Part shown: piece after piece, positions 12,201 to 46,808 of the stretch | Layout: the number at the start of each line of letters is the position of its first letter | Numbering within the stretch: position 1 is the stretch's first letter | From: Magallana gigas | Lineage: Eukaryota | Length of the DNA: 64,000 nt | NCBI RefSeq assembly: GCF_963853765.1 | Contig: NC_088860.1 | Span: 37,076,001-37,140,000, forward strand | Direction of reading: 5' to 3' | The notes under the pieces: generated by a model | Databases searched by the model: none | What the model was told of the DNA's origin: nothing | The model's input: the letters and a program-made list of their open reading frames with translations, nothing else | Program-made: the position numbers and the translations under genes

Positions 12201-15200
12201 ATTGCTTTTTTATCTTTTGAAAACATTTCTTTAATTCACAAATGATTAAGATGGCCGCACACCCCATTAATAGAAATAGCAGTTGAGCATTGTTATTTCA
12301 AATCATTTCCATGCATTTAATCTGCTGGAATCTAATAAGTTTTAACAAATTTGATAATCTAATTGCACAAATAGCATGCCAGTGAATGGAGCGAAAATTG
12401 AACTTACTATGTATATACGGACAGGATAAAGCTTACCGGTTTCCTTTGGATTTTTTTTAAGGTCTTAGTGACTGTATTTTTCCCTTTCTTGCTGTTTACG
12501 CCCTTTTTGAATGTCGATGCGATGGGGGAGAAGAAAGTCAGGACTTTCCAGAAAATCCTAACGTTTTACACTGCTCCGATTACAAAGTTTACCCATTACT
12601 CGGTAATTCAAACACTGGAATCCTGCTAGTTGATTTTTTTTCAAACATTGTATTTCCCATATTATGGTAATAAAATTTTTTACAGTATTTGATTTTTTTT
12701 TACAGATCCTGTACATTTTCTTTGTGGCTCTATTTACCTACTTTCTATTAGTGGACTACCAACCAAACGAAATCACCACAATCGAGAGAATCTGCATATT
12801 TTGGATTTTTACATTCATTGTAGATGAAATTTACACAGTAAGTTTTCATCAAACTCCTGCAATATCGATATGTATGCAGATATTTGCAAATATTAGTTGC
12901 TAACAATTTATAATTATATACATTTAGTCATCATTTTTTCTTCAAATGTTTTTTTATGAATCTTAAGTTCGAATTCTATTGTTAGATTATTGAGTTAATT
13001 TTTTTTATAGCTACTGACTTTTCCATCCCCGACTTTTGGTGGAAAGATAAGAGACTGGTACGGAATGTTAAAATGTATAGACTTGTTCAATCTATTGTTC
13101 GCGTTATTAGCATTTGTGATTCAGGTCATTACAATGCATACGAACGAGAATGCGATTAATGTCAGGATTGTATTCTCAATCAACTGTATAATTTTCTACA
13201 TACGAATAATGAAGCTGTACACAGCAAACAGCAGTCTTGGACCCAAGCTTGAGATGATCAAAATGATGGTGAGTCAGAGTTTGCAATGCTTTGATAAATT
13301 TTCAAAGTTTCCAAATAATAAGGCAGAATGGTTTTTTTTTCTTTCAGTTCCTATTTAAATATGTTATATTTTGTCTATATTTGTATTCATATTTTAAAAT
13401 GATACATGTATACATTAGTAGACAAATGTTCCTTTTTTAAAAAAAAATCCAAAACCTAACTATTGTTGCCTCTCTTTTGTTTTTGAATAGTCGAATTATG
13501 ATATATGCTGATTTGTACGCGATTGTGACATCCGATATACCATAAGACCATCGCCACTGTGGCCAAATTTTAAAATGATGTTCGATGACCCATGTAGGCC
13601 ACCATGGGTTTATCTTGTAATTTTATGGCTTAACATTTGAAAAAAAATGTAAAGAACATATCCTTCAAAACAAGCCTAAAATAATATCAAACTTGTCTGC
13701 TTTTTCATAATAATAAATTATGCTGAAAAAACGTGACTATCTTAAAGTTTGACACAAATGCCTACTTTAAGAAACTATTCCAGAGAAGTGCTATTACAAT
13801 AGCTTTCATTCTAACTATACACCATTAAAAATAGAATTACACTCTGAAGACTATACCTATTTCATGTTGCATTACTATCAATTACCTCCACGATATAAAG
13901 TTATTTTTTACAGTTACTGTCATGTCAAATGAAACCAATATGAACTTGCGACAAGTGAAATTGAGTCGATTAAAATATACAACACTGAATAATATGTTAT
14001 GTATTTTTCCAGTTTGCCGAACTTACGACTTTTCTCTTAGTGGTAATTGTCTTTCTCGCGGCTTACGGAGTGTCCAGGCACTCGCTTCTCTATGGGCGAA
14101 CAGAAGCATCATGGAAAATCTTCACAGACATTTTATTTCATCCCTACTGGCAGCTGTATGGAGAACTTGATTTTGATAATTCAATGAAAAGTAATGTATT
14201 TCAGTTAATGAAATTGCCAAAAAAAATATTTAAAACTAGATATTTATTTTTAAAAAGTTTATCATTTTAAACAAATGCATTTAAATGCAATTGTCAATAG
14301 TAAGAGTCTACAAGCACTTAATACTGAGCTAAAAACTTATGCACACAAAGGAATGAAACTTTATAATTCAAACATTTTATTTCATAATACAATTTCTAGA
14401 TATAAAAATATTAAAACAAACATCATATGGTACTCTGCAACACATTTCCTATTACCCACCTGATCCTATTTATTAAATAAAAATAAAAACATACTTAACT
14501 GATCAATTAAAACCAAGATTTTATATGTAAAATCCGGCTTAATTTAACATATGCGTGAATGAACTTTAAATGGTGGATAAAACAGTACAAATGCTCTAAA
14601 ATAATAATTAGAACATGTTCAGGTATGTTTTCTTTTTGTGTTTTTCTTATCATATATATTCAAATGTAGAATTCTATGATTGCAAAAATAATAACCATAA
14701 TTCAGTACTAGAGTTGGCAAAATGTTTTAGTTTGACCTTTATTGTGCGTTGTTTCAAGTATTTTTACTTCAATGGTTTAATACTTAAACTTTATCCAATT
14801 ATTAATTAAGATTAGTTTTTCCTTTTGTTCCTTAGCGGCGGACAACGCTGGAAGTCCAAATTTAACTCCGACGACTACTTCATCGATATCGGACACTAGG
14901 TGTCCTTGTTGGATTTCATCATTACAGATGAACTTGACGAATTCATCGCAATCGGAACAGGGCTGCCCTTGTTGGTATTCTTCAGTACAGAATAGGTTGA
15001 CCAGTTCATCGCTATCGGACATCGGATGTCTTTGTTGGAATTCATCAATACAGATAAACTTCAACAATTTGTCGATATTTGACATTAACTGTCCGCGCTG
15101 GAATTCCTCAGTACGGATGAACTTGATCAATTCATCGATAACGGACATTGAATGTCTTTGTTGTAATGCCCTACCTCAGAATAACACAGCGATTCCGCAA

Positions 15201-18200
15201 ATATTAAACGTGGAGAATCTAAATATCGTATTGGTATATATTCTGTGTGCAGGATATCTCATTATCGGCACTATCCTGTTGTTCAATCTTCTCATTGCCA
15301 TATTCAAGTAAGGCGCGTTTACTTAGTCACTATATTTAAATTGTTATGCTTTCAATTTAAACACTGAAATCTGATTGGTTTAGACGCTGTTTATAATTTG
15401 TTCTATTATCATCAGCGTTAGCAAAACACTTTGCAACGGGTAACACAACAAATCATTATTGCGCGTAGATATGTGCATTCGTGTCATTATTAAAACTTTA
15501 TGAAACAGATTCGTATCAACAAGAAAAACACATCCATTTGTTTTAATGAGAAACAATGTTTTTACAAGATTTTTTCTTATTAAAATCGTGTTTTTCACAA
15601 CGATTCATAAGCAAGTTTATTATACCCGTATGGATGTTTCTCGTTGGTACGGATGTTTTACGTGATGTGGTCTTTAATGTGAAGGAAAATGTTAAATTTT
15701 TGATTTTTTTTTTCAAAACGTTCATTGGAAGTAAATGTAAACATAGCGGTAAAGAAGTTACTAATCCAGTAAGTGTATATACTAGGTCCTTTTACAACTC
15801 ATTTCTTTGGAGATGATAATATCATTGGTGTAAGATATGCAAATTAAAAAAAAAAAATCAAATTAAAGTTGTGTCGATACTGATATGTATCCCTACAGCA
15901 GGAAAACAGGATCAGATTGAAAAATACCGTCAGTTATTCATTAAGAAAAATAACCCCTGCGCTGTTCACAGGTTCCTGACGTTATAAATGTTTATAGAAT
16001 ACAAATTTATCTATTATTGTATCAACTGCATGGCTTTTTACATTTAGCATTTATCTGTCAAGTACATTTGACAATTTTATTTTTTGTGGACTCAATAAAA
16101 AAGGATTATTCACAAAGAACTCTGAAAATATCATCGTCCCTCAATTGTTTGCTACATGTACGAACGTGAAATTATTTAAGCCTTTTTTGCTGCTGTTAAT
16201 CTGTAAATCTTTAATTTGATTTCATTCAGCCACATCTTTACTAAAGTGGAAGAAAAATCCAACGAAATCTGGAAGTTCCAAATGTACTTCTTAACCATGG
16301 AGTTTGACAATAAGACTGCCTTGATTCCCCCATTGAGTATCATCCATCATTTGTACCTGTTTTTCAAACTGATAGCAAGAAAAACTTGCTGTGAGAAAAG
16401 TTCTAAAGGTAAATGTTGAAAAAGGTCATGTGAAATGGTCCTAAAGGTACATGTCGCTCAAAGTAAACCATGAGTAGACGCAAAGTTTTAAAAAGCAGAC
16501 CCCGAGTAAACCCCAAGTAAAACCCGGAAGTAAATTTTGGGTTTACCTGGAATCTGCTCTAGTTTTAGGTTGCGTCTGACCGGTAAGTGTAGGTGAGCGA
16601 CATGGTCCATTGCTATCTTGTCGCTTTTCTTTGCAGGAGTTCAGTTTACTGAGCGACATCTGGAATATTTACAACTTTTTGAGACGGAGGAAATGGCCAA
16701 CTATCTGCGGCATAAAAAATCAGAACACAAGGATTCGGCTGAGTCCAAACTTCAGAAAAGGTAGCATTAAAGCTCGAATCACGTTGTGCAGAGGCCACAT
16801 GGCTGTTTAGTAAAAACCATAGTTTGCATTTTATACGAAGTTATTGTTCAACATGTGATTTTGATTTCTCTAAAATGAAAATTAAAAACGCACAAAATAC
16901 ACAAGTATATCAACAAAAGATGACTAAAAAATTCTCAATGTTTAAAATGAACAGGGTTGAGGAACTCTTTAATCTTGTGGAGGAAGAGTTTACGGCTGAT
17001 CAGGAAGATGCCCTCACACTTCTCAACACAAAGACAGCAAACTTAACGAGAGAGAACACATCTGAGCGTATAACGTTAAAGTCTAATAGATGGCCCAAAC
17101 CAAAGGCTGTCATAGAGTTTGCCAAGAAGCTAGAAGAGAAGGAAGCCATGGAGGTGGCAACAGAGGTCTCAAGTTGTTCATTGTCTTAATTTTAACTGTT
17201 ACATATTACAAGCAGTATTTATTAATTTGTGACGAAAAGTACCAATCATTCTAAAACGTAGATGTTGGTCATATATAACATAATCTATTGCCGAACTTGT
17301 GAAAAACGATGCATCATGTGAGAAATCTATCTTTTTACGATAAAATACTTCTTCTGCTTTAATTCAAAAACGCCATTGATTGGATTTATGTCTTACTTTC
17401 ATATCGTAAAGTTTATGGAAGAAAATCATTGTTGCAGTATAGATGTGCTGAGAGAGAATATGTTTTGACATTGAATTAAGATTATCTCAAAATATTATTT
17501 AAACATATTTTTTTTTACAAACAATTATGCAGTTAACACACGCCCTGTTACTGTCTATGCTCGGATGTAAATATTAATCAAGTAAATCATACTTTAATCA
17601 CATCTAAATGCAAGATAAGATAATTGCAAATCTAAATAAAATGATTCACATGAACATGTTGATAGCATTTACAAGCTTACACAGATCAAATGTTACAAAT
17701 GTATAGGTTAACTTTATATGATGATTCAATTAAAAGCTTGTTCATTATATGATTTGTCTTGTTCATATAGACCCTGAAGGATGAAGAAAAAATTAAGAGA
17801 GCGGGGACAAAGAAGGACAGAAAATATAAGAGAAAATTGAAAGAAGTGAAAATTTATATAACAGACCAAGAAAATGAAGCAGAACCTATAATTGAACCAG
17901 ACATCGAAGCTCGGATCCATCTTCCTGGGCCCACCGGGATAACTCCGCCTCTAAGACATTCAAGAAATCTGTCTCCATGGGCAATCAACCGCAAACCGGA
18001 TAACAGAACTCTTTACACACATCGGCGTGTGTCATTACAACATCATTCGTCTGACAGTGAGGACAACGAACAAGTAAAATATCCGGTGCAGTATAAAACT
18101 CTGGGTATTCCAGAGGAAACCAGTTCAGAATCATCACCGTGTGGTTCCGATACAGGCGTTCCCAGGATAACGAGGAGACGGTTATCACTGAGGCGGACGG

Positions 18201-18286
18201 AGAGTAGTACGGAAGACGAGCTACGATCTAGAGCTAAACTTTTTCAAAGATTTCGTCGAAATCGACAGCTATCGGATTCAGATTAA
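23..18286 (+). CDS. TRPM: TRPM-family cation channel, paralogue A (5'-partial; 20 coding exons in window; subfamily unresolved, no C-terminal enzyme domain)
   Basis: 20 GT-AG exons join in frame (3831 nt incl. stop). Motifs: NAWMITTG, IGIGPWG, LNPNHTHFVFVDDG, LEGG, GTGRAADILA, LALTWNRADIA, FYTAPITKF, LGPKLEMIKMM, PYWQLYGEL, NLLIAIFN, WKFQ. Every exon has a same-phase counterpart in paralogue B. Confidence 0.95.
593..767 (+). CDS. Paralogue A exon 7, SLOG/MHR1-2
   Basis: ttag|GGC...CAAG|gtataa; GCFPVHF...LNPNHTHFVFVDDG...; 175 nt as in B. Confidence 0.93.
840..1000. other. Assembly gap (N run) in intron 7 of paralogue A
   Basis: N run; B shows no exon missing between exons 7 and 8. Confidence 0.99.
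1024..1189 (+). CDS. Paralogue A exon 8, SLOG/MHR2
   Basis: gacag|CT...AG|gtaagc; AGGLGIPVVLVILEGG...GTGRAADILAYAY. Confidence 0.93.
1360..2400. repeat. Degenerate (ATGCT/ATGGT) pentanucleotide-rich repeat interrupted by a TIR element
   Basis: atgctatggtatg-type motifs recur at about 1360-1730 and resume at about 2313-2400. Confidence 0.6.
1731..2308. mobile_element. Non-autonomous TIR element (Kolobok-like AGG...CCT termini)
   Basis: Left aggactatgtgcggt...gccccc is the imperfect inverse of right gggggc...accgcacttagtcct; flanks tgaa/ttca are not a clean TTAA TSD; no ORF. Confidence 0.65.
2435..2582 (+). CDS. Paralogue A exon 9
   Basis: ttag|C AAA...TTG|gtacat; KLRDKINEAYGGRW...; 148 nt as in B. 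Confidence 0.9.
2810..2876 (+). CDS. Paralogue A exon 10
   Basis: acag|ATT...T|gtgagt; INIFPMNKHEDLDIAILTALLN; 67 nt as in B. Confidence 0.92.
4506..4625 (+). CDS. Paralogue A exon 11, MHR3
   Basis: ttag|CT...A|gtatgg; NQLQLALTWNRADIAQEEIF; 120 nt as in B. Confidence 0.92.
4727..4857 (+). CDS. Paralogue A exon 12, MHR3
   Basis: ttag|GA...AAG|gtcagt; SLDDILMEAIIEEKVEFV...LQQLYQK; 131 nt as in B. Confidence 0.92.
5019..6348. mobile_element. Non-autonomous Kolobok-like element with TTAA TSD
   Basis: ttaa|ggtaatggtccatac ... gtatggataattacc|ttaa; 15-bp TIR with 2 mismatches; GG/CC termini; no transposase ORF. Confidence 0.65.
6850..7425 (+). mobile_element. Helentron-associated (HINE/DINE-1-like) non-autonomous element
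   Basis: T-run, subterminal IR agccgggctct / agagcccggct (7393-7403), 5' hairpin ctctgctgaaagcagag, internal (GA)n at about 7301-7351, short 3' stem-loop then T-rich. Confidence 0.65.
7529..7925. mobile_element. MITE with 31-bp TIRs
   Basis: agctgaacaccactcgtaaataggcactgtc (7529-7559) inverted at 7895-7925 with 3 mismatches. Confidence 0.7.
7971..8227 (+). CDS. Paralogue A exon 13, MHR3/4
   Basis: tcag|TCA...AG|gtagag; ...LFKHPYKQLMVWSILMLR; 12 nt longer than B. Confidence 0.92.
8808..8951 (+). CDS. Paralogue A exon 14, MHR4
   Basis: tcag|A CAA...GA|gtaagt; QKMAKFAWQMGSEPITSAVAAARIY; 144 nt as in B. Confidence 0.93.
8978..9420. mobile_element. MITE-like element
   Basis: aatctgattaaaatcagatcc (8984-9004) inverted at 9389-9409 with 1 mismatch; exact ends uncertain. 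Confidence 0.5.
10198..10339 (+). CDS. Paralogue A exon 15, MHR4
   Basis: acag|T GAG...ATG|gtgcgt; EFEHLARSVIDECH...WSEMTSLQIAA; 142 nt as in B. Confidence 0.93.
10726..10800 (+). CDS. Paralogue A exon 16, MHR4/pre-S1 (absent from ORF track)
   Basis: taaag|GTT...CAG|gtaatc; VYLSSVACRNSIDATWRRGILSRWQ; island of near-identity with 42439-42516; aligns to the TRPM FVAH..CQ..L...W.G region. Confidence 0.85.
12462..12602 (+). CDS. Paralogue A exon 17, pre-S1
   Basis: taag|GTC...TCG|gtaatt; VLVTVFFPF...FYTAPITKFTHYS; 141 nt as in B. Confidence 0.92.
12706..12837 (+). CDS. Paralogue A exon 18, S1-S2
   Basis: acag|ATC...ACA|gtaagt; ILYIFFVALFTYFLLVD...FIVDEIYT. Confidence 0.93.
13011..13268 (+). 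CDS. Paralogue A exon 19, S3-S4 and S4-S5 linker
   Basis: atag|CTA...ATG|gtgagt; ...RIVFSINCIIFYIRIMKLY...LGPKLEMIKMM; 258 nt as in B. Confidence 0.94.
14013..14190 (+). CDS. Paralogue A exon 20, S5, pore helix, selectivity filter
   Basis: ccag|TTT...A|gtaatg; ...AYGVSRHSLLY...ILFHPYWQLYGEL; 178 nt as in B. Confidence 0.94.
14836..15307 (+). CDS. Paralogue A exon 21, outer pore loop with five 21-aa repeats, plus S6
   Basis: ttag|CG...AA|gtaagg; open 472 nt with the same phases as the 217-nt B exon; ends YLIIGTILLFNLLIAIF. Confidence 0.9.
14880..15194 (+). repeat. Coding 63-bp tandem repeat, 5 units (last degenerate)
   Basis: Units start at 14880, 14943, 15006, 15069, 15132; units 1 and 3 differ at about 12 of 63 nt by hand count. 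Confidence 0.92.
15333..15460 (+). mobile_element. Diverged fragment related to the hairpin element at 56571-56943
   Basis: ttgttatgctttca...actgaaatctgattggtttagacgc...cagcgttagca...gcaacgggtaaca matches that element's 5' end. Confidence 0.55.
16230..16408 (+). CDS. Paralogue A exon 22, TRP helix
   Basis: tcag|C CAC...G|gtaaat; HIFTKVEEKSNEIWKFQMYFLTMEF...LIPPLSII; 179 nt as in B. Confidence 0.94.
16637..16760 (+). CDS. Paralogue A exon 23, rib helix
   Basis: gcag|GA...AG|gtagca; HLEYLQLFETEEMANYLR; 124 nt as in B. Confidence 0.9.
16955..17165 (+). CDS. Paralogue A exon 24, coiled-coil and start of tail
   Basis: acag|G GTT...GAG|gtctca; VEELFNLVEEEF...; 211 nt as in B; weak donor placed by paralogy. 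Confidence 0.8.
17771..18286 (+). CDS. Paralogue A exon 25, terminal Ser/Arg-rich tail
   Basis: atag|ACC...TAA; ends RNRQLSDSD*; collinear with 52534-53061. Confidence 0.88.
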   Translation, partial: TLKDEEKIKRAGTKKDRKYKRKLKEVKIYITDQENEAEPIIEPDIEARIHLPGPTGITPPLRHSRNLSPWAINRKPDNRTLYTHRRVSLQHHSSDSEDNEQVKYPVQYKTLGIPEETSSESSPCGSDTGVPRITRRRLSLRRTESSTEDELRSRAKLFQRFRRNRQLSDSD

Positions 18287-21154: not shown

Positions 21155-21638
21155 AAAATTGACAATAAAAAACCGTGAACCATCCCAAAAGTCCATAAAA
21201 CGAAATACAAATTCAAAGTAGAGCAACACGGACCTCCAAATAGATAGAGGAGGTAGGATCAGGTGCCTAGGATGAGTGGGCATCCTCTGCTGACCGGTCA
21301 CACCCGCCGTGTGCTCTATGTCGTAATCGGAAAAAACATGGAAAAAGTCCGTAGATAATTAGGTGATTAATTATGGTTCTGACAATTAGTATGAAAAACG
21401 TCAGTCAGCATGCGACCCAGTGGAAGATTGTATTTGCTGACAGGGTCTTTGTATCGACCATAGAACTTACGAAAAGATGACTTCAAACGAGACTGTTGAT
21501 TGTCCTGTTTTATCAACTTGTTTGTCAGTGGCTTGCTTCGCCTTAGAAACTATTCATACGAAGAGCATGCCCTTGCGTATATCAACTAAGAGACAAAACA
21601 CCATAAACAGGTGATGAATGTATATTGCTACAAGTAAG
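21155..21638 (-). mobile_element. 5'-truncated Penelope-like (Naiad-type) retroelement 3' end
   Basis: Minus strand gives decayed ...CSNI...MLTDVFHTN-type RT C-terminus then a 3' tail; homologous to 55262-55760. Confidence 0.6.
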
Positions 21639-35572: not shown

Positions 35573-35644
<72 letters not shown>

Positions 35645-41600: not shown

Positions 41601-43153
41601 AATGATGATGTTCCAGAAACAAGACATGTTACTCTAAATATAGTTCAATAATACACCCACTGATATGAAATGTCAAAAACATCGAAGTGTAAAGCACAGA
41701 ATAATTTTATCATTTTCAGTAGATTGGGTATCAAATACTTTGGATTCTTTAAAGTAGGCATCAGTTTTCGTAAATTGAAAACAGTTTCAAGGATAAGCAA
41801 ACGTTTTTGAATTGATCATAAAAATGTTTGTTTTTGTTTTATATGCACTTTCATCATCAACTCAACAACCAGTGAAAGTATTATTCAACAAGTATATGTG
41901 TTGGTGATAACTCAGTAAATTCTGTTTCACAGTGAGTTTGAGCACCTGGCAAGAAGTGTTCTTGACGAGTGTCATGCAAAACAAAAGGACAAGGCGATGA
42001 TGCTGGCCGAGAGGAAATCTCCAACCTGGAGTTCAATGACCAGTCTACAGATAGCAGCCTCCGCAAAGAATATGGTACGTTACATCTAATATTTGTAGAA
42101 CAGTCAACTAGAACAATGAAACAAGAGCAGCTTTGCTAACACTTATAACATACACCAGGTCATATCATAGGTGATTATTTTTATGGACAAATGTTGAATG
42201 TATGAAGCATTCAATGCAATCTGTTCAATTGTTATTACTTGTGAATTTATCAAATCAATTCCATTATACGTAATAAGTATTCAGAGGAATAAAGCATTCT
42301 TTCATTTCAAAATCTGAGAAAAGCATATACCAACCAATAAGCAAAACATAAAAATACAGAAGGCAGGACAAAATAAGTCTTATATTATTCTATGTTGATT
42401 TTATAAGTATCAGTAATTATACTTCTTTTGTTTTAAAGGTTTATCTCTCATCTGCAGCTTGTCGAAATTCGATCGACGCAACATGGCATCAGGGGATTTT
42501 ATCTCGATGGAAGAGGGTATACCAATTAATCGCTGAAATCACAGTTACCTTGTTTAACCAATAACCATTCATAGATAAAATTTATCGATAACATTTTCTA
42601 TATTTATTTTATCATCATAGATTGTATTGTGAATTTATTCCATTAGATTTGAAGTTTCAGAAACGTATAGGAGCTAGAAATAAGACTGTTTATCAAGTTG
42701 GTATTACAACTTAATGCGCTAAAGATTGATCTTAATATATAATGTAGTAGTTTTTAAGAATAATTTTAACTTTTTGATTGCTAAAAAAGCAAACCAGTTA
42801 GTTAAAATGGAATAACTAAGTATATATCATATATACATAATTCGACTTGTCAGTTTCTAATCTTTGTAGGTCTTAGTAACTGTGATTTTCCCTTTTTTCC
42901 TGTGGACAAACTTTCTTCAAGTTGATTCAATGGGGGAGAAGGAAGCTAAGACTTTTCAAAAAATCCTTACGTTTTACACAGCACCAGTTACAAAATTCAT
43001 CCATTACTCGGTAAGTCTAGCGCGGGAATGTTTAGATCTTCAGATATTATATGATATGGTATTATAAATTAAGGACTGGGGTATTTGGAAGTCGGGCTTT
43101 TTTATATGCGGTTGTGCATATTGTGTAGAAATAAGATTGTCAAACATCTCTCT

Positions 43154-43214
<61 letters not shown>

Positions 43215-46200
43215 AAAAGGTGAGGAAATATATTTCTATTTCAATGTATATATACAGTGTACAAGGTTATTTGCATCTACAATACATCAACTGTATTTTT
43301 GGTTTTAGTGCAAAATGCATTTGGTATTGGCAAACGGTCAAAGTGTGACTTATTTTTATAACCTATCTGTCTACCCAAAAAATAACTTTTGAGTGTTTAC
43401 CCTGATAAATAGAATAATTTGAAAATTACGAAATAAAATAGTTTCCAACATTTCATAACTGATATGTCTTTTTGTCAATAGCAAAGTTAAAATAAGACAA
43501 CAGCGAATTTAAAAAAAACAATTATTCTTGACAAAGTGTCAATATTAAATTTGTATTTTTCTGAGGGTGTTTTATATGATTTGCATTTTTTGTGACTGAG
43601 ACTTTTTTGCAGATAGTTTTTTTAAACACTTAACGAGGCCGAGTACAGAACGAGTACGCACGCTTTCGCGCAGCGTTTCATTTGTATTGTGACGTCATCT
43701 TTTTGCTTTGTTGACGCCATGGCGTGGTAGTTTCAACTGCAGATATTCAGCGAAATTTGTTGAAAATAACTTGTTTGATGCGTAAAATTGATATTATATT
43801 GTGGAATAAACATAAATGTCTCGAAGTATAAGCTATATTTGGGCTCGAGTCGAAAATGTGAAGAGGGTTCAGCAAGTCTAGCCTTTTGTCACGTTTTCTT
43901 AACCCGCCTAAATATAGCTTAAATCATATTTCAAAACAGTAACCATGTATTTTTTATTAATGACCCTTAATATGTGATGTTATATATTTATTTATTACTT
44001 AAATATGTCTGAATGTTTTAATAATACTATAAAGGTCACCATATCCGCCTTTGTCAAATAAAAAATAGCCATTATCTGACAAACTAGGAAACTGGGCATA
44101 CAAAAAAAACAACTTTGATAAGACCCCTGGAACAAACCAGGAGGTAAAAGGTTTTTTTTATTAGACCATTTGATGCCTTTCAGCAATAACTTTAATATGT
44201 AGAACAGAAAAAGAAATCCCTAGGGCAGAAGTTTAAAAAAATTGTAAAAAATGTGCAAAATTGATCAAAATCCCATAGGGTCCTATGTTAAAAATTAACA
44301 CACTTTGATATGACCCCTTAAACAAACGGTGTGGTAAATGTCTTATTTTTCTATCTTAAAATAATAATTATATCAGTAGAAATTCATATAAAAAATTTCA
44401 TTCAAAAATCTAGGGCAGAACAAATTAGACCCGGCCTCGTTAAATTGATCAAACTGATCAATAAGGAAAGACCCAGAGCCGTTGAAATGTTGGTGTCTGC
44501 AATGTTTCTGAAACAGTTTAACTAACTCTAAAATTGTTTATATGGGTTTTGTGTTCTCTGCATTGTTTTAAATACTTAGCAATACAAAGGAGACGTTATT
44601 TTGATATATTTTTTCTTCTGTTAGAGTAACTTTCTTGCCATCGTCAAAGATTTTCGTCCATCTCTGTTTGGTCATTTTGTGTCACCTGTAGTCTAGAAAG
44701 TCTGCATCATATAATAATTCTACTCTTATATTCATATTTATCAGTGCCAAACAAACAATATTGAAAGAACATAACATATTAACATAGATTACTTAGGGAC
44801 CATGTTTTTTCGCGAATGGTTTTCAAGAAGAACATTTTTCATAATTTAAGAGTTTAATAGTACTGTTACTTTAGCATACTATTTTTTGATGCAGACTAGA
44901 TTTCCAGATATTTCGTGGATTAAGATAACTTTTTCGTGTTCCGATAAACATATTTGAACAATTTTTGAATATATTTCTATAGACATATTTTGGCATATTA
45001 GACTTACATTTCATAAAAGTCAAGAAAAATGGTAAGTTAAAACCAGCTTATTTCATGCCATATCTTAATTACAGTCATAATTTGAGTACTCCAATATTTG
45101 TGACAATCTTAACAATCTATTCCCATGTTAATTATATCTAGGCATTTGAAGCAACCACTTGATATTCACTATATGTTTTCAAATTTATACTGAATTAAAA
45201 TCATTAAAGATTCAAGAAGAGTGGGTTGGCTGGTTGAGNNNNNNNNNNNNNNNNNNNNNNNNNNNNNNNNNNNNNNNNNNNNNNNNNNNNNNNNNNNNNN
45301 NNNNNNNNNNNNNNNNNNNNNNNNNNNNNNNNNNNNNNNNNNNNNNNNNNNNNNNNNNNNNNNNNNNNNNTCAGAGCCTTTCATGACAACTTTATTTTTA
45401 TTGTTTACACACTCTTTACATGTTTTCTTTATGATCTGCTTACAGTATTATTCATTGTTTTACAGATCCTGTACATTTTCTTTGTGGGTCTGTTTACATA
45501 CTTTCTATTAGTGGACTATCAACCAGACAAAATCACAACAATCGAGGTTATCTGTATTTTCTGGATAATAACATTCATTGTAGATGAGCTTTACACAGTA
45601 AGTTGACATAATTTTCCCGCTATATGCATTTTAATGCAGATACATGTACCTATGCAGATTAATGTGAATGCTACACAGAAAAATCATGAATCTTTGAAAT
45701 GCAGACACTGAAACGCATTACTACACCAAGTGTGTATTTCAAGCACGCTTCTCACGCTATAGAGTTTGAACGATACGAGTTTCTTGCACGGTACGATACG
45801 CTTCTTGTATGATACGATACGTTTTTCATGCACTTTCCATTCAGTTTGTTATTTTTTTTCTAATATGAATTATAATATCTGTTTCGTTCTGTTTACTGCA
45901 AAAATTACAATGTTTTACACAAGTATAACAAGAAATTATAGCGATAAGGGGGTCATGTTTCCATTTAGGTCACTTTTTTCACATTGAGTTTGCTCATTTT
46001 ACTGCAAATGACACTCATTCTTCAGGGGAAAAAAGTCATTTTTCAACGTGAAATAAAAACCAGGGACTTCCTGGTTTATAAATTATAAATAACACTAATA
46101 CATTATTAATATGACTTGATACATTTATACAGTTTTTCTTTACATGCGTATCGAAAGTACTCTTCGCCTACTAAGAGTAAAGTTTATTTATTCCTTATTA

Positions 46201-46258: not shown

Positions 46259-46345
<87 letters not shown>

Positions 46346-46729: not shown

Positions 46730-46808
<79 letters not shown>

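Follow-up and report, generated by a model that had tools for sequence, protein, structure and literature searches.

In vertebrate TRPM channels, the loop between the selectivity filter and S6 is short and contains two Cys, 5–17 residues apart, that are presumed to form a disulfide (PMC13143021), and this post-filter disulfide is essential in both TRPM2 and TRPM8 (PMC13143021; PMC10301734). The essential bond in TRPM8 is C929–C940, and loss of the glycan at N934 in the same loop shifts V1/2 by about 60 mV (PMC10301734). Here, we describe a TRPM gene (gene A) in a 64,000-nucleotide stretch of Magallana gigas DNA (the window) that carries a tandem array of five modules in the corresponding loop, between the filter (YGEL, in the preceding exon) and S6. 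Gene A belongs to a tandem C-A-B cluster of three neighbouring TRPM paralogues, and an array-bearing outer pore loop was not found described for any TRPM in the literature. The features are as follows, with positions in the window:

14013–14190, + strand: gene A exon with the end of S5, the pore helix and the filter (YGEL at 14157–14168), from PDB phmmer matches and RNA junctions; donor GT at 14191
14836–15307, + strand: gene A pore-loop and S6 exon, 472 nt, phase 1 in and phase 2 out, with the whole repeat inside
14880–15194, + strand: array of five tandem units of 63 nt (21 aa) each, from Tandem Repeats Finder (TRF), the unit table, pairwise identities and per-codon differences
14880–14942, 14943–15005, 15006–15068, 15069–15131 and 15132–15194, + strand: array units 1 to 5
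15087–15101, + strand: 15-nt stretch encoding NCPRW in unit 4, absent in frame from L015, a ~93%-identical copy from another public run (L015/window exon alignment)
15096, + strand: segregating C/T in unit 4, CPRW (reference) or CPCW (7/20 reads in run X22, 2/4 in X23)
15164, + strand: segregating T/G in unit 5, CLCC (reference) or CLCW (G in 23–50% of RNA reads; also carried by L015 and the organism-B contig)
15210–15305, + strand: coding part of the gene A S6 helix (...VLVYILCAGYLIIGTILLFNLLIAIF), from the AlphaFold2 helix and the TRPM4 alignment of the B exon; kept in A, B, C and the homologue L008
16230–16408, + strand: next gene A exon, TRP helix and TRP box (IWKFQMYFL), from sequence reading and RNA junctions
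49337–49553, + strand: paralogue B pore-loop and S6 exon, 217 nt, with one unit at 49369–49431 (SSVSDIECTCWNSSSRWNLTV)

The loop of gene A occupies the same post-filter, pre-S6 position as that of TRPM8, and in both a first Cys is followed by an N-glycan sequon. TRPM8, however, has a single Cys pair 10 residues apart with the N934 glycan at the apex, whereas gene A has vicinal C-x-C motifs in five modules and lacks the canonical second Cys. The filter also differs: the Gln of TRPM2/4/5/8 is a Glu in gene A. Similarity is greatest to TRPM7, TRPM3, and TRPM1, which share with gene A the S5-pore-helix-filter exon, the G-E filter, the N-terminal SLOG domain, and the TRP box. Three exons (2–250, 593–805, and 1002–1190) match the SLOG family of TRPM (LSDAT_euk, PF18139) at 46.9, 29.8, and 55.4 bits (cut-off 25.7). 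A phmmer search of PDB with the pore exon matches TRPM7/3/1/2/5/8/4, with TRPM7 and TRPM3 best (E about 2e-9); ...FHPYWQLYGEL of gene A aligns to FHPYWMIFGEV of TRPM7, with the filter Glu common to both. These matches bear out the placement of the repeat in a TRPM outer pore loop by the first-pass annotation. The six-transmembrane core is represented by the pore helix, an [FY]G[EQ] filter, and an S6 ending in NLLIA.F; the S6 of the paralogue B exon aligns to TRPM4 and that of A is nearly identical to it, and the TRP helix and box follow in the exon from 16230. The pair of loop Cys 5–17 residues apart is missing from both A and B, although TRPM membership stands because this pair is a conserved trait rather than a defining domain. 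By its filter Glu and closest similarity, gene A is an alpha-type TRPM (TRPM1/3/6/7-like). The C-terminal alpha-kinase domain that distinguishes the TRPM6/7 channel-kinases had no Pfam match in the scanned exons of gene A, a set that leaves out the two coiled exons at 16637–17165, and the last, 171-residue exon had no Pfam match.

The array consists of head-to-tail units whose length is divisible by three, as in a coding minisatellite, with the consensus SS.SD..C.CW.SS.Q.NL.N and a divergent 3' half of unit 5. TRF reports a period of 63 nt, 4.6 copies, and 71% matches at 14879–15167; this, the unit table, and the single B unit confirm the proposed contrast between A, with five 21-residue modules, and B, with a single one. 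The A exon is longer by 255 nt (4 x 63 + 3), in frame and stop-free, as had been claimed, and the B loop is shorter by 85 residues. On the + strand of the exon, the frame starting at 14838 is the only open one, although an open sense frame through the repeat is required in any case because S6 is encoded downstream. The antisense frame is likewise open across the repeat. A 126-nt super-unit (TRF score 301) was rejected, with A1–A3 81% identical and A2–A4 just 60%, as was a dispersed satellite or transposon, given a single match to the repeat in the 564-Mb genome. Runs of N occur in the window at 840–1000 and 45239–45370.

The gene A loop contains 10 Cys and 8 N-x-S/T sequons, compared with 2 and 2 in the loop of B (by direct reading), in agreement with the first-pass counts; the number of Cys in A, however, is not fixed. 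The residue between the two Cys of C-x-C is P, L, or T, and three pairs have the form CPC. The 8 sequons exceed the 4.4 expected from composition (p = 0.04), and about half of the sequon positions of the ancestral unit survive, by direct reading of the unit table. In an AlphaFold2 model of the exon alone, S6 is a helix (residues 125–155, pLDDT >90); the loop has pLDDT of about 26–52, and its repeated short strands are not trustworthy.

Gene A is intact and expressed. Its splice sites (14190|GT, AG|14836, 15307|GT, and AG|16230) are all present and used by RNA reads. The two junctions on which the repeat exon depends, and which had been proposed as a check, are both seen, with GT..AG borders: 14190>14836 in 4 reads with 4 starts (X22), and 15307>16230 in 3 reads each from X22 and X23; 13268>14013 is also observed. 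Stranded polyA reads cover the repeat, with a depth of 4–18x across 14836–15307 in X22 and every first mate on the - strand, and expression in three runs is ~2–9 reads per exonic kb per million reads. The RNA-supported spliced cDNA from 12460 has a single 736-codon ORF closed by a stop; the gene A ORF ends at 18283–18286, following a low-complexity tail. Silence of the gene or an internal acceptor skipping the repeats had been named as grounds for abandoning the original proposal; the gene is expressed, and no acceptor within the repeat exon is among the junctions listed for the three RNA runs. Use of the cryptic CAG acceptors within the units would bring stops into frame, and none is seen in RNA. 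An alternative exon at the loose end 13268, suggested by three X21 reads, was discarded, as these reads derive from paralogue C. In all three runs, depth on units 1–2 is lower by 3–5 times than on units 3–5, which could conceal divergent alleles or an isoform under the listing threshold.

Exon structure is common to A, B, C, and the homologues L008 and L016, and S6 is nearly identical among them. The array is confined to gene A within this set, and B has a single CxCW unit. The ancestral loop, a C-x14-26-C pair with sequons, is seen in paralogue C, L008, and L016. In A and B only the C-x-C is present: aligned with paralogue C, L008, L016, and TRPM4, from which loss of the second Cys and gain of the C-x-C are read, the canonical second position is an Asp in B and falls in LNVENLN in A. 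Beyond these sequences, searches returned little. The module had no homologue in other proteins among 50%-identity representatives, a set too coarse to prove it absent: the A exon retrieved only three unrelated repetitive proteins and a C-type fragment (P0005). Homologue searches were restricted to lengths of 0.55–1.75x the query, which leaves out full-length TRPMs; within that range the A exon returned P0001 alone (a B-type orthologue fragment, named TRPM member 1 of Magallana gigas in UniRef), P0001 returned intron-plus-exon ORFs of TRP and C-terminal exons and nothing else, and the B exon returned no match. No relatives were found in metagenome contigs with the A/B/C alignment as query, and no contigs encoding P0001 are on record. 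In the Logan contigs, the gene caller chose the ORF antisense to the repeat, reading through a TGA, and the sense exon is therefore missing from the protein collection.

The same five units occur in two independent DNA sources. An organism-B short-read contig (X20 record 3) spans 13245–15386 without a 63-nt indel and differs by 1 nt in the exon; L015 has introns 3–5% substituted relative to the window. No copy-number variation of the unit was found among the window, these two contigs, and the three RNA runs, which are few sources. Among the units of gene A, dS is 0.2–0.75, and because of this divergence and the five units common to the organism-B contig and L015, the array is old and not the product of recent slippage. 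This agrees with the first-pass reading of its age, although nucleotide identity among units is 56–81% (mean near 67%) rather than about 80%. Gene A is under purifying selection (A vs B, dN/dS 0.18 at dS 0.72), and in the S3–S5/pore exons 5/5 listed SNPs are synonymous. In the turret, by which we mean the enlarged loop, constraint is partial: between the window and L015 dN/dS is 0.41 for the whole loop, with 0 nonsynonymous vs 4 synonymous changes in units 2–3 (dN/dS 0) and values of 1.1–1.5 in the linker plus unit 1 and in units 4–5. The central units are thus kept while the edges drift, and the near-neutral loss of Cys and sequons in relatives that the first-pass annotation had set against its own proposal is seen in units 4–5 but not in units 2–3. 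Counts in all of these constraint and variation tests are small.

The possibility that the array was misassembled, or that its exon is a pseudo-exon or is skipped in mature mRNA, is barely credible. Tandem repeats are prone to misassembly, and RNA depth drops on units 1–2, but the organism-B contig crosses the region without a unit-sized indel, L015 again holds five units, junction reads fall at the predicted exon borders, and the spliced ORF is continuous; this reading is already contradicted. A tolerated passenger, that is, a coding minisatellite in a permissive disordered extracellular loop with modules that have no specific role, is a distinct though doubtful possibility; such an array would persist only because S6, and with it the channel, would be lost to any frameshift or stop. 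Consistent with this are a dN/dS of ~1 for most pairs of units and at the array edges between lineages, the loss of roughly half of the sequon positions present in the ancestral unit, listed loop SNPs that are 6 nonsynonymous to 1 synonymous, nonsynonymous SNPs in the extracellular S1–S2 loop as well, and the low-confidence AlphaFold2 model of the loop. The R/C and C/W polymorphisms in the motifs, together with the deletion of one unit 4 motif in L015, demonstrate that individual Cys of the array are dispensable. Against the passenger reading are the absence of nonsynonymous changes in units 2–3, a retention of Cys above that of a neutral simulation (P(>=9/10 Cys kept) = 0.03), a copy number of five in all four sources despite unit dS of at least 0.2, and the likely cost, if they are useless, of carrying ten Cys, most of them unpaired, through the secretory pathway.

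At the other extreme, the CxC(W) stack could be a dedicated sensor or shield, which binds Zn2+ or Cu+/2+ or oxidizes reversibly to gate the channel, or which blocks toxins as a glycan/Cys cap; we consider this improbable. In favour of this reading, a filter with the TRPM7/3-type Glu has vicinal CxC pairs, CPC in three cases, immediately above it, and the units at the centre of the array are conserved. In other proteins, motifs of the CxC and CPC kind have redox activity or bind soft metals, and Zn and Cu build up in oysters. However, the number of Cys varies from 8 to about 11 across alleles and relatives, with odd counts among them, the residue between the Cys is not conserved, and no homologous module was found in the other proteins searched. 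The fixed cap first proposed (~40 Cys and 32 glycans) is weakened by this variation in Cys number between alleles and close lineages, by the survival of only about half of the inherited sequons, and by edge dN/dS of about 1 or higher; moreover, the one CxC of B would share the chemistry, which leaves the fivefold repeat unexplained. The narrower proposal that the five C-x-C-W modules are a putative thiol/metal (Zn/Cu) or redox sensor gating a divalent-permeable TRPM in a metal-hyperaccumulating animal is more improbable still.

The best explanation as a whole, to which we give an even chance, is that a duplicated module has produced a glycosylated, partly disulfide-linked cap that tunes the channel under partial constraint. 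Before A and B separated, their shared ancestor would have lost the canonical second Cys and gained a new Cys two residues past the canonical first, so that C-x-C-W came to precede the ancestral N-glycan sequon. In gene A, a 63-nt segment would then have been duplicated in frame, presumably by unequal crossing-over or replication slippage, into five head-to-tail copies, later than the A/B split but long before two or more of today's lineages diverged. The mRNA holds all five units, and each subunit would therefore have ~84 extra extracellular residues between filter and S6. This elongated turret, in which Ser, Asn, and Cys are abundant, is predicted to be N-glycosylated and partly disulfide-linked, and may surround the pore mouth as a flexible cap that adjusts maturation or gating of the channel or the access of extracellular modulators; it would extend the role of the single disulfide-and-glycan loop of TRPM8. 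Extra extracellular protein at the pore mouth affects gating or access in other channels, including the TRPV1 turret, the PKD2 TOP domain, the TRPML luminal domains, and the K2P cap, and these structures often carry disulfides and glycans. They differ from gene A in being folded domains or short turrets, formed by other loops (S1–S2; TM1–P1 in K2P), with no tandem short repeats and no homology to its turret.

The gene A product is a real, expressed, lineage-specific TRPM1/3/7-like variant with an enlarged Cys-rich turret that is probably glycosylated. The TRPM post-filter loop is normally short, with one conserved disulfide, and this natural channel replaces that design. Genes A (five units), B (one unit), and C (ancestral type) offer a ready-made series on the contributions of turret, disulfide, and glycan, which bears on TRPM folding, gating, and extracellular modulation, and provide a case of coding repeats remodelling the outer mouth of a channel in oysters, whose TRP repertoire is expanded. 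Should the modules be inert, they would still measure the insertion tolerated by a TRPM post-filter loop; if the sensor reading is true, they would represent a new chemosensor design, in which repeat expansion enlarges a pore turret and selection sets how many units and Cys it contains.

The pore-loop and S6 exon of paralogue A (14836-15307, + strand) has a single open + frame, starting at 14838 (three + frames compared), which encodes, in order, a short Ser/Thr-rich linker, five 21-residue units, and a hydrophobic helix ending LLFNLLIAIF. The five-unit repeat in this loop is real: a 63-nt period is detected at 14879-15167 (Tandem Repeats Finder; 4.6 copies, 71% matches), and the units, along with the homologous exon of the neighbouring paralogue B, are as follows.

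Units of the A loop and the homologous exon of B
A unit 1, start 14880, + strand: SSISDTRCPCWISSLQMNLTN
A unit 2, start 14943, + strand: SSQSEQGCPCWYSSVQNRLTS
A unit 3, start 15006, + strand: SSLSDIGCLCWNSSIQINFNN
A unit 4, start 15069, + strand: LSIFDINCPRWNSSVRMNLIN
A unit 5, start 15132, + strand: SSITDIECLCCNALPQNNTAI
B homologous exon, 49337-49553, + strand: single unit, 49369-49431

The first-pass annotation had described five tandem units in A against one in B, in an in-frame, stop-free exon 255 nt longer, and the frame, the unit table, and the exon lengths (472 nt in A vs 217 nt in B; 255 = 4 x 63 + 3) bear this out. Its loop contents were likewise correct on recounting, at 10 Cys and 8 N-x-S/T sequons in A vs 2 and 2 in B (B by direct reading), but its unit identity of about 80% is replaced by a recomputed pairwise nucleotide range of 56-81%. 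The array matches once in the 564-Mb genome, which rules out a dispersed satellite.

Two tandem paralogues occupy the + strand of the window, A (window start to ∼18286) and B (∼28800-53060), and a third, C, lies on the same contig ∼53 kb upstream of the window (C8:37020803-37024514; L002, L004, L007). The N-terminal exons of A match Pfam PF18139 (SLOG in TRPM) over the curated cut-off, and exon 14013-14190 aligns with solved TRPM7 and TRPM3 structures (E ∼2e-9) across S5, the pore helix, and the filter, where FHPYWQLYGEL in A corresponds to FHPYWMIFGEV in TRPM7; the filter Glu suggests divalent permeability. The TRP box, IWKFQMYFL, is encoded in the exon 3' of the repeat exon. No kinase domain was found among the A exons scanned with Pfam, so A is classed as a TRPM1/3/7-like channel without a kinase; its last exon (171 residues) has no Pfam match. 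UniRef gives the name 'TRPM member 1' to P0001, a B-type fragment of Magallana gigas, and 66 TRP genes, including five TRPM1 copies, have been reported from this species (Fu et al., PMC8004665).

The surrounding sequence contains several other repeats. The intron 3' of the repeat exon carries a very high-copy element (15350-15514; summed contig depth 12,621 in run X20), and downstream of B (56570-57323) lie two tandem 373-bp copies, 98% identical, of a sequence that resembles it by eye. Similar open frames (ETVD.PVLSTCLSVAC.ALE..HTKSMPL...) occur downstream of A (21441-21611) and of B (55479-55754), reflecting either a flank duplicated with the gene or a shared mobile element. Introns of B contain long perfect (TA)n microsatellites of 33-42 copies (35575-35640, 46262-46343, and 46731-46813), and (CT)n runs occur near 43150 and 60960.

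The repeat is present in A mRNA. Three stranded polyA RNA-seq runs from the same organism (X21, X22, and X23; ∼1% of each run read) were mapped to 12380-17300, and GT..AG junction reads were found at every intron in this interval. These include both junctions that the first-pass annotation had proposed checking, 14190>14836 (4 reads with 4 starts, X22) and 15307>16230 (3 reads each in X22 and X23). The repeat exon is covered to a maximum of 18x in X22 and 5x in the other two runs; first mates all fall on the - strand, as expected of + strand RNA in a dUTP library, and a rough count puts expression at 2-9 reads per exonic kb per million reads. Lack of expression, or an internal acceptor that skips the repeats, would have told against the array; A is expressed, and no joint to such an acceptor was listed in the three runs at ∼1% each. 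Joined from 12460, the RNA-supported exons form one 736-codon ORF from S1 to the stop at 18284-18286.

In each of the three runs, depth over units 1-2 (14855-15019) is 3-5 times below that over units 3-5, and no joint or indel accounting for this was listed in any of them. Haplotypes differ most in the 5' part of the exon (8 differences in 130 nt vs L015, a Logan contig with the related exon), and reads from a divergent allele may therefore have failed the 95% likeness filter. The antisense frame is also open over the repeat (14777-15148, - strand; 123 aa from ATG); the RNA reads run in the sense direction. For one public Logan contig, a gene caller took this antisense ORF (with a TGA read through), and the sense exon is consequently absent from the protein collection. 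Three X21 reads from the C exon that matches A 13011-13268 (S3-S4, preceding the S5-pore exon) cross-mapped to A at 13268.

The array also occurs in two independent DNA sources. One is a short-read contig (X20 record 3) from a run under another organism label, which covers 13245-15386; it differs by six substitutions, of which 15164 T>G alone falls in the exon, and by three 1-nt indels. The other, L015 (SRR6063055), is ∼93% identical across 3.5 kb, with introns 3-5% substituted, and has the same five units; the expansion is therefore older than the split of these lineages. Synonymous divergence among the A units is 0.2-0.75 (youngest pair, A1-A3), and A and B differ by dS 0.72 with dN/dS 0.18 (409 conserved codons). 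These values indicate that both genes are under purifying selection and that the array is old yet postdates the A/B duplication, in agreement with the earlier view that it is not fresh slippage. An artefact or a skipped exon is practically excluded. A is an alpha-type TRPM gene, intact, expressed, and maintained by selection, in whose post-filter loop a 63-nt segment has been duplicated fivefold in frame.

Four homologues retain a classical TRPM loop, its two Cys separated by 14-26 residues with intervening sequons: C (C-x24-C, NFS sequon), the C relative P0005, L008 (the next paralogue, on contig 7), and a more distant oyster-like homologue (L016 229-459; C-x26-C with NNS and NDT sequons) on the ENA scaffold TIMM21-1_SAMN15655972_METAG-scaffold_8281, host-like DNA in a metagenome assembly. 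In vertebrate TRPMs the pair is 5-17 residues apart, and its mutation affects function in TRPM2 and TRPM8 (PMC13143021). The first Cys and following sequon of A and B match their canonical counterparts in the alignment (D-I-E-C in B, D-Q-E-C in C), but both paralogues lack the canonical second Cys (Asp at this position in B, aligned to TRPM4) and have a new Cys at +2 from the first, followed by Trp. The repeated unit thus comprises the canonical first Cys, a new Cys, Trp, and a glycan sequon. The A loop is inferred to be extracellular from the topology of TRPM channels and the matched structures; within the secretory pathway, its sequons probably acquire glycans and its Cys probably become oxidised.

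Sequence comparisons, all with small counts, point to partial constraint on the array. The variants that bear on its Cys content are as follows.

SNPs in the A loop
15096 C/T, unit 4: CPRW vs CPCW
15164 T/G, unit 5: CLCC vs CLCW

With the 15-nt in-frame deletion that removes NCPRW of unit 4 in L015, these variants bring the Cys per loop to between 8 and ∼11, odd numbers included. Nonsynonymous differences also occur in the S1-S2 loop (12778, 12789) and at 12501: T72P (organism-B contig only), R75S, and P14S (RNA reads).

The reading to which we give an even chance is that A forms an enlarged, flexible, glyco-Cys turret, adding ∼340 residues around the pore mouth of a homotetramer, which would tune maturation, gating, or extracellular access, with central units that matter and edges that drift. 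A tolerated passenger expansion is the main rival, appreciably less probable. Cys and sequon loss at neutral rates, which the first-pass annotation had named as grounds for rejection, describes units 4-5 of the array (dN/dS of 1.1 vs L015, small counts; the unit 4 deletion), but not units 2-3 (4 synonymous and 0 nonsynonymous changes, small counts); dN/dS in linker plus unit 1 is 1.5. Whole-loop dN/dS in the same comparison is 0.41, vs 0.17 and 0.10 in the flanking exons, and the listed SNPs are 6:1 nonsynonymous to synonymous in the loop vs 0:5 in the S3-S5/pore exons (Fisher p = 0.015). Most unit pairs within A have dN/dS ∼1, and about half of the ancestral-unit sequon positions survive. In a crude simulation that let the unit consensus drift neutrally through as many changes as were observed, 9 or more of the 10 Cys survived in 3% of trials; 3% were stop-free, an open frame being needed anyway for the downstream S6. 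Sequons exceed the number expected from composition (8 vs 4.4, p = 0.04), and fewer codons depart from consensus in the motif (22/165) than elsewhere (38/150; p = 0.009), the motif having been picked after viewing the data.

The redox or Zn/Cu sensor of the first-pass annotation, or its toxin shield, is chemically plausible, and in other proteins CxC and CPC motifs take part in redox reactions or bind metals; the variable Cys number weakens the idea, and we consider such a specific role improbable. AlphaFold2 on the exon alone gave a confident S6 and a loop at pLDDT 26-52, a result neutral between the readings.

Full-text literature searching turned up no account of a TRPM with a repeated pore loop, and no other protein with the module was found in protein searches using a candidate length window, 50%-identity representatives, and gene callers that, on public contigs, favoured the antisense ORF. 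With the ancestral pair in C, one CxCW unit in B, and five units in A, the cluster offers a natural series for dissecting the TRPM turret.
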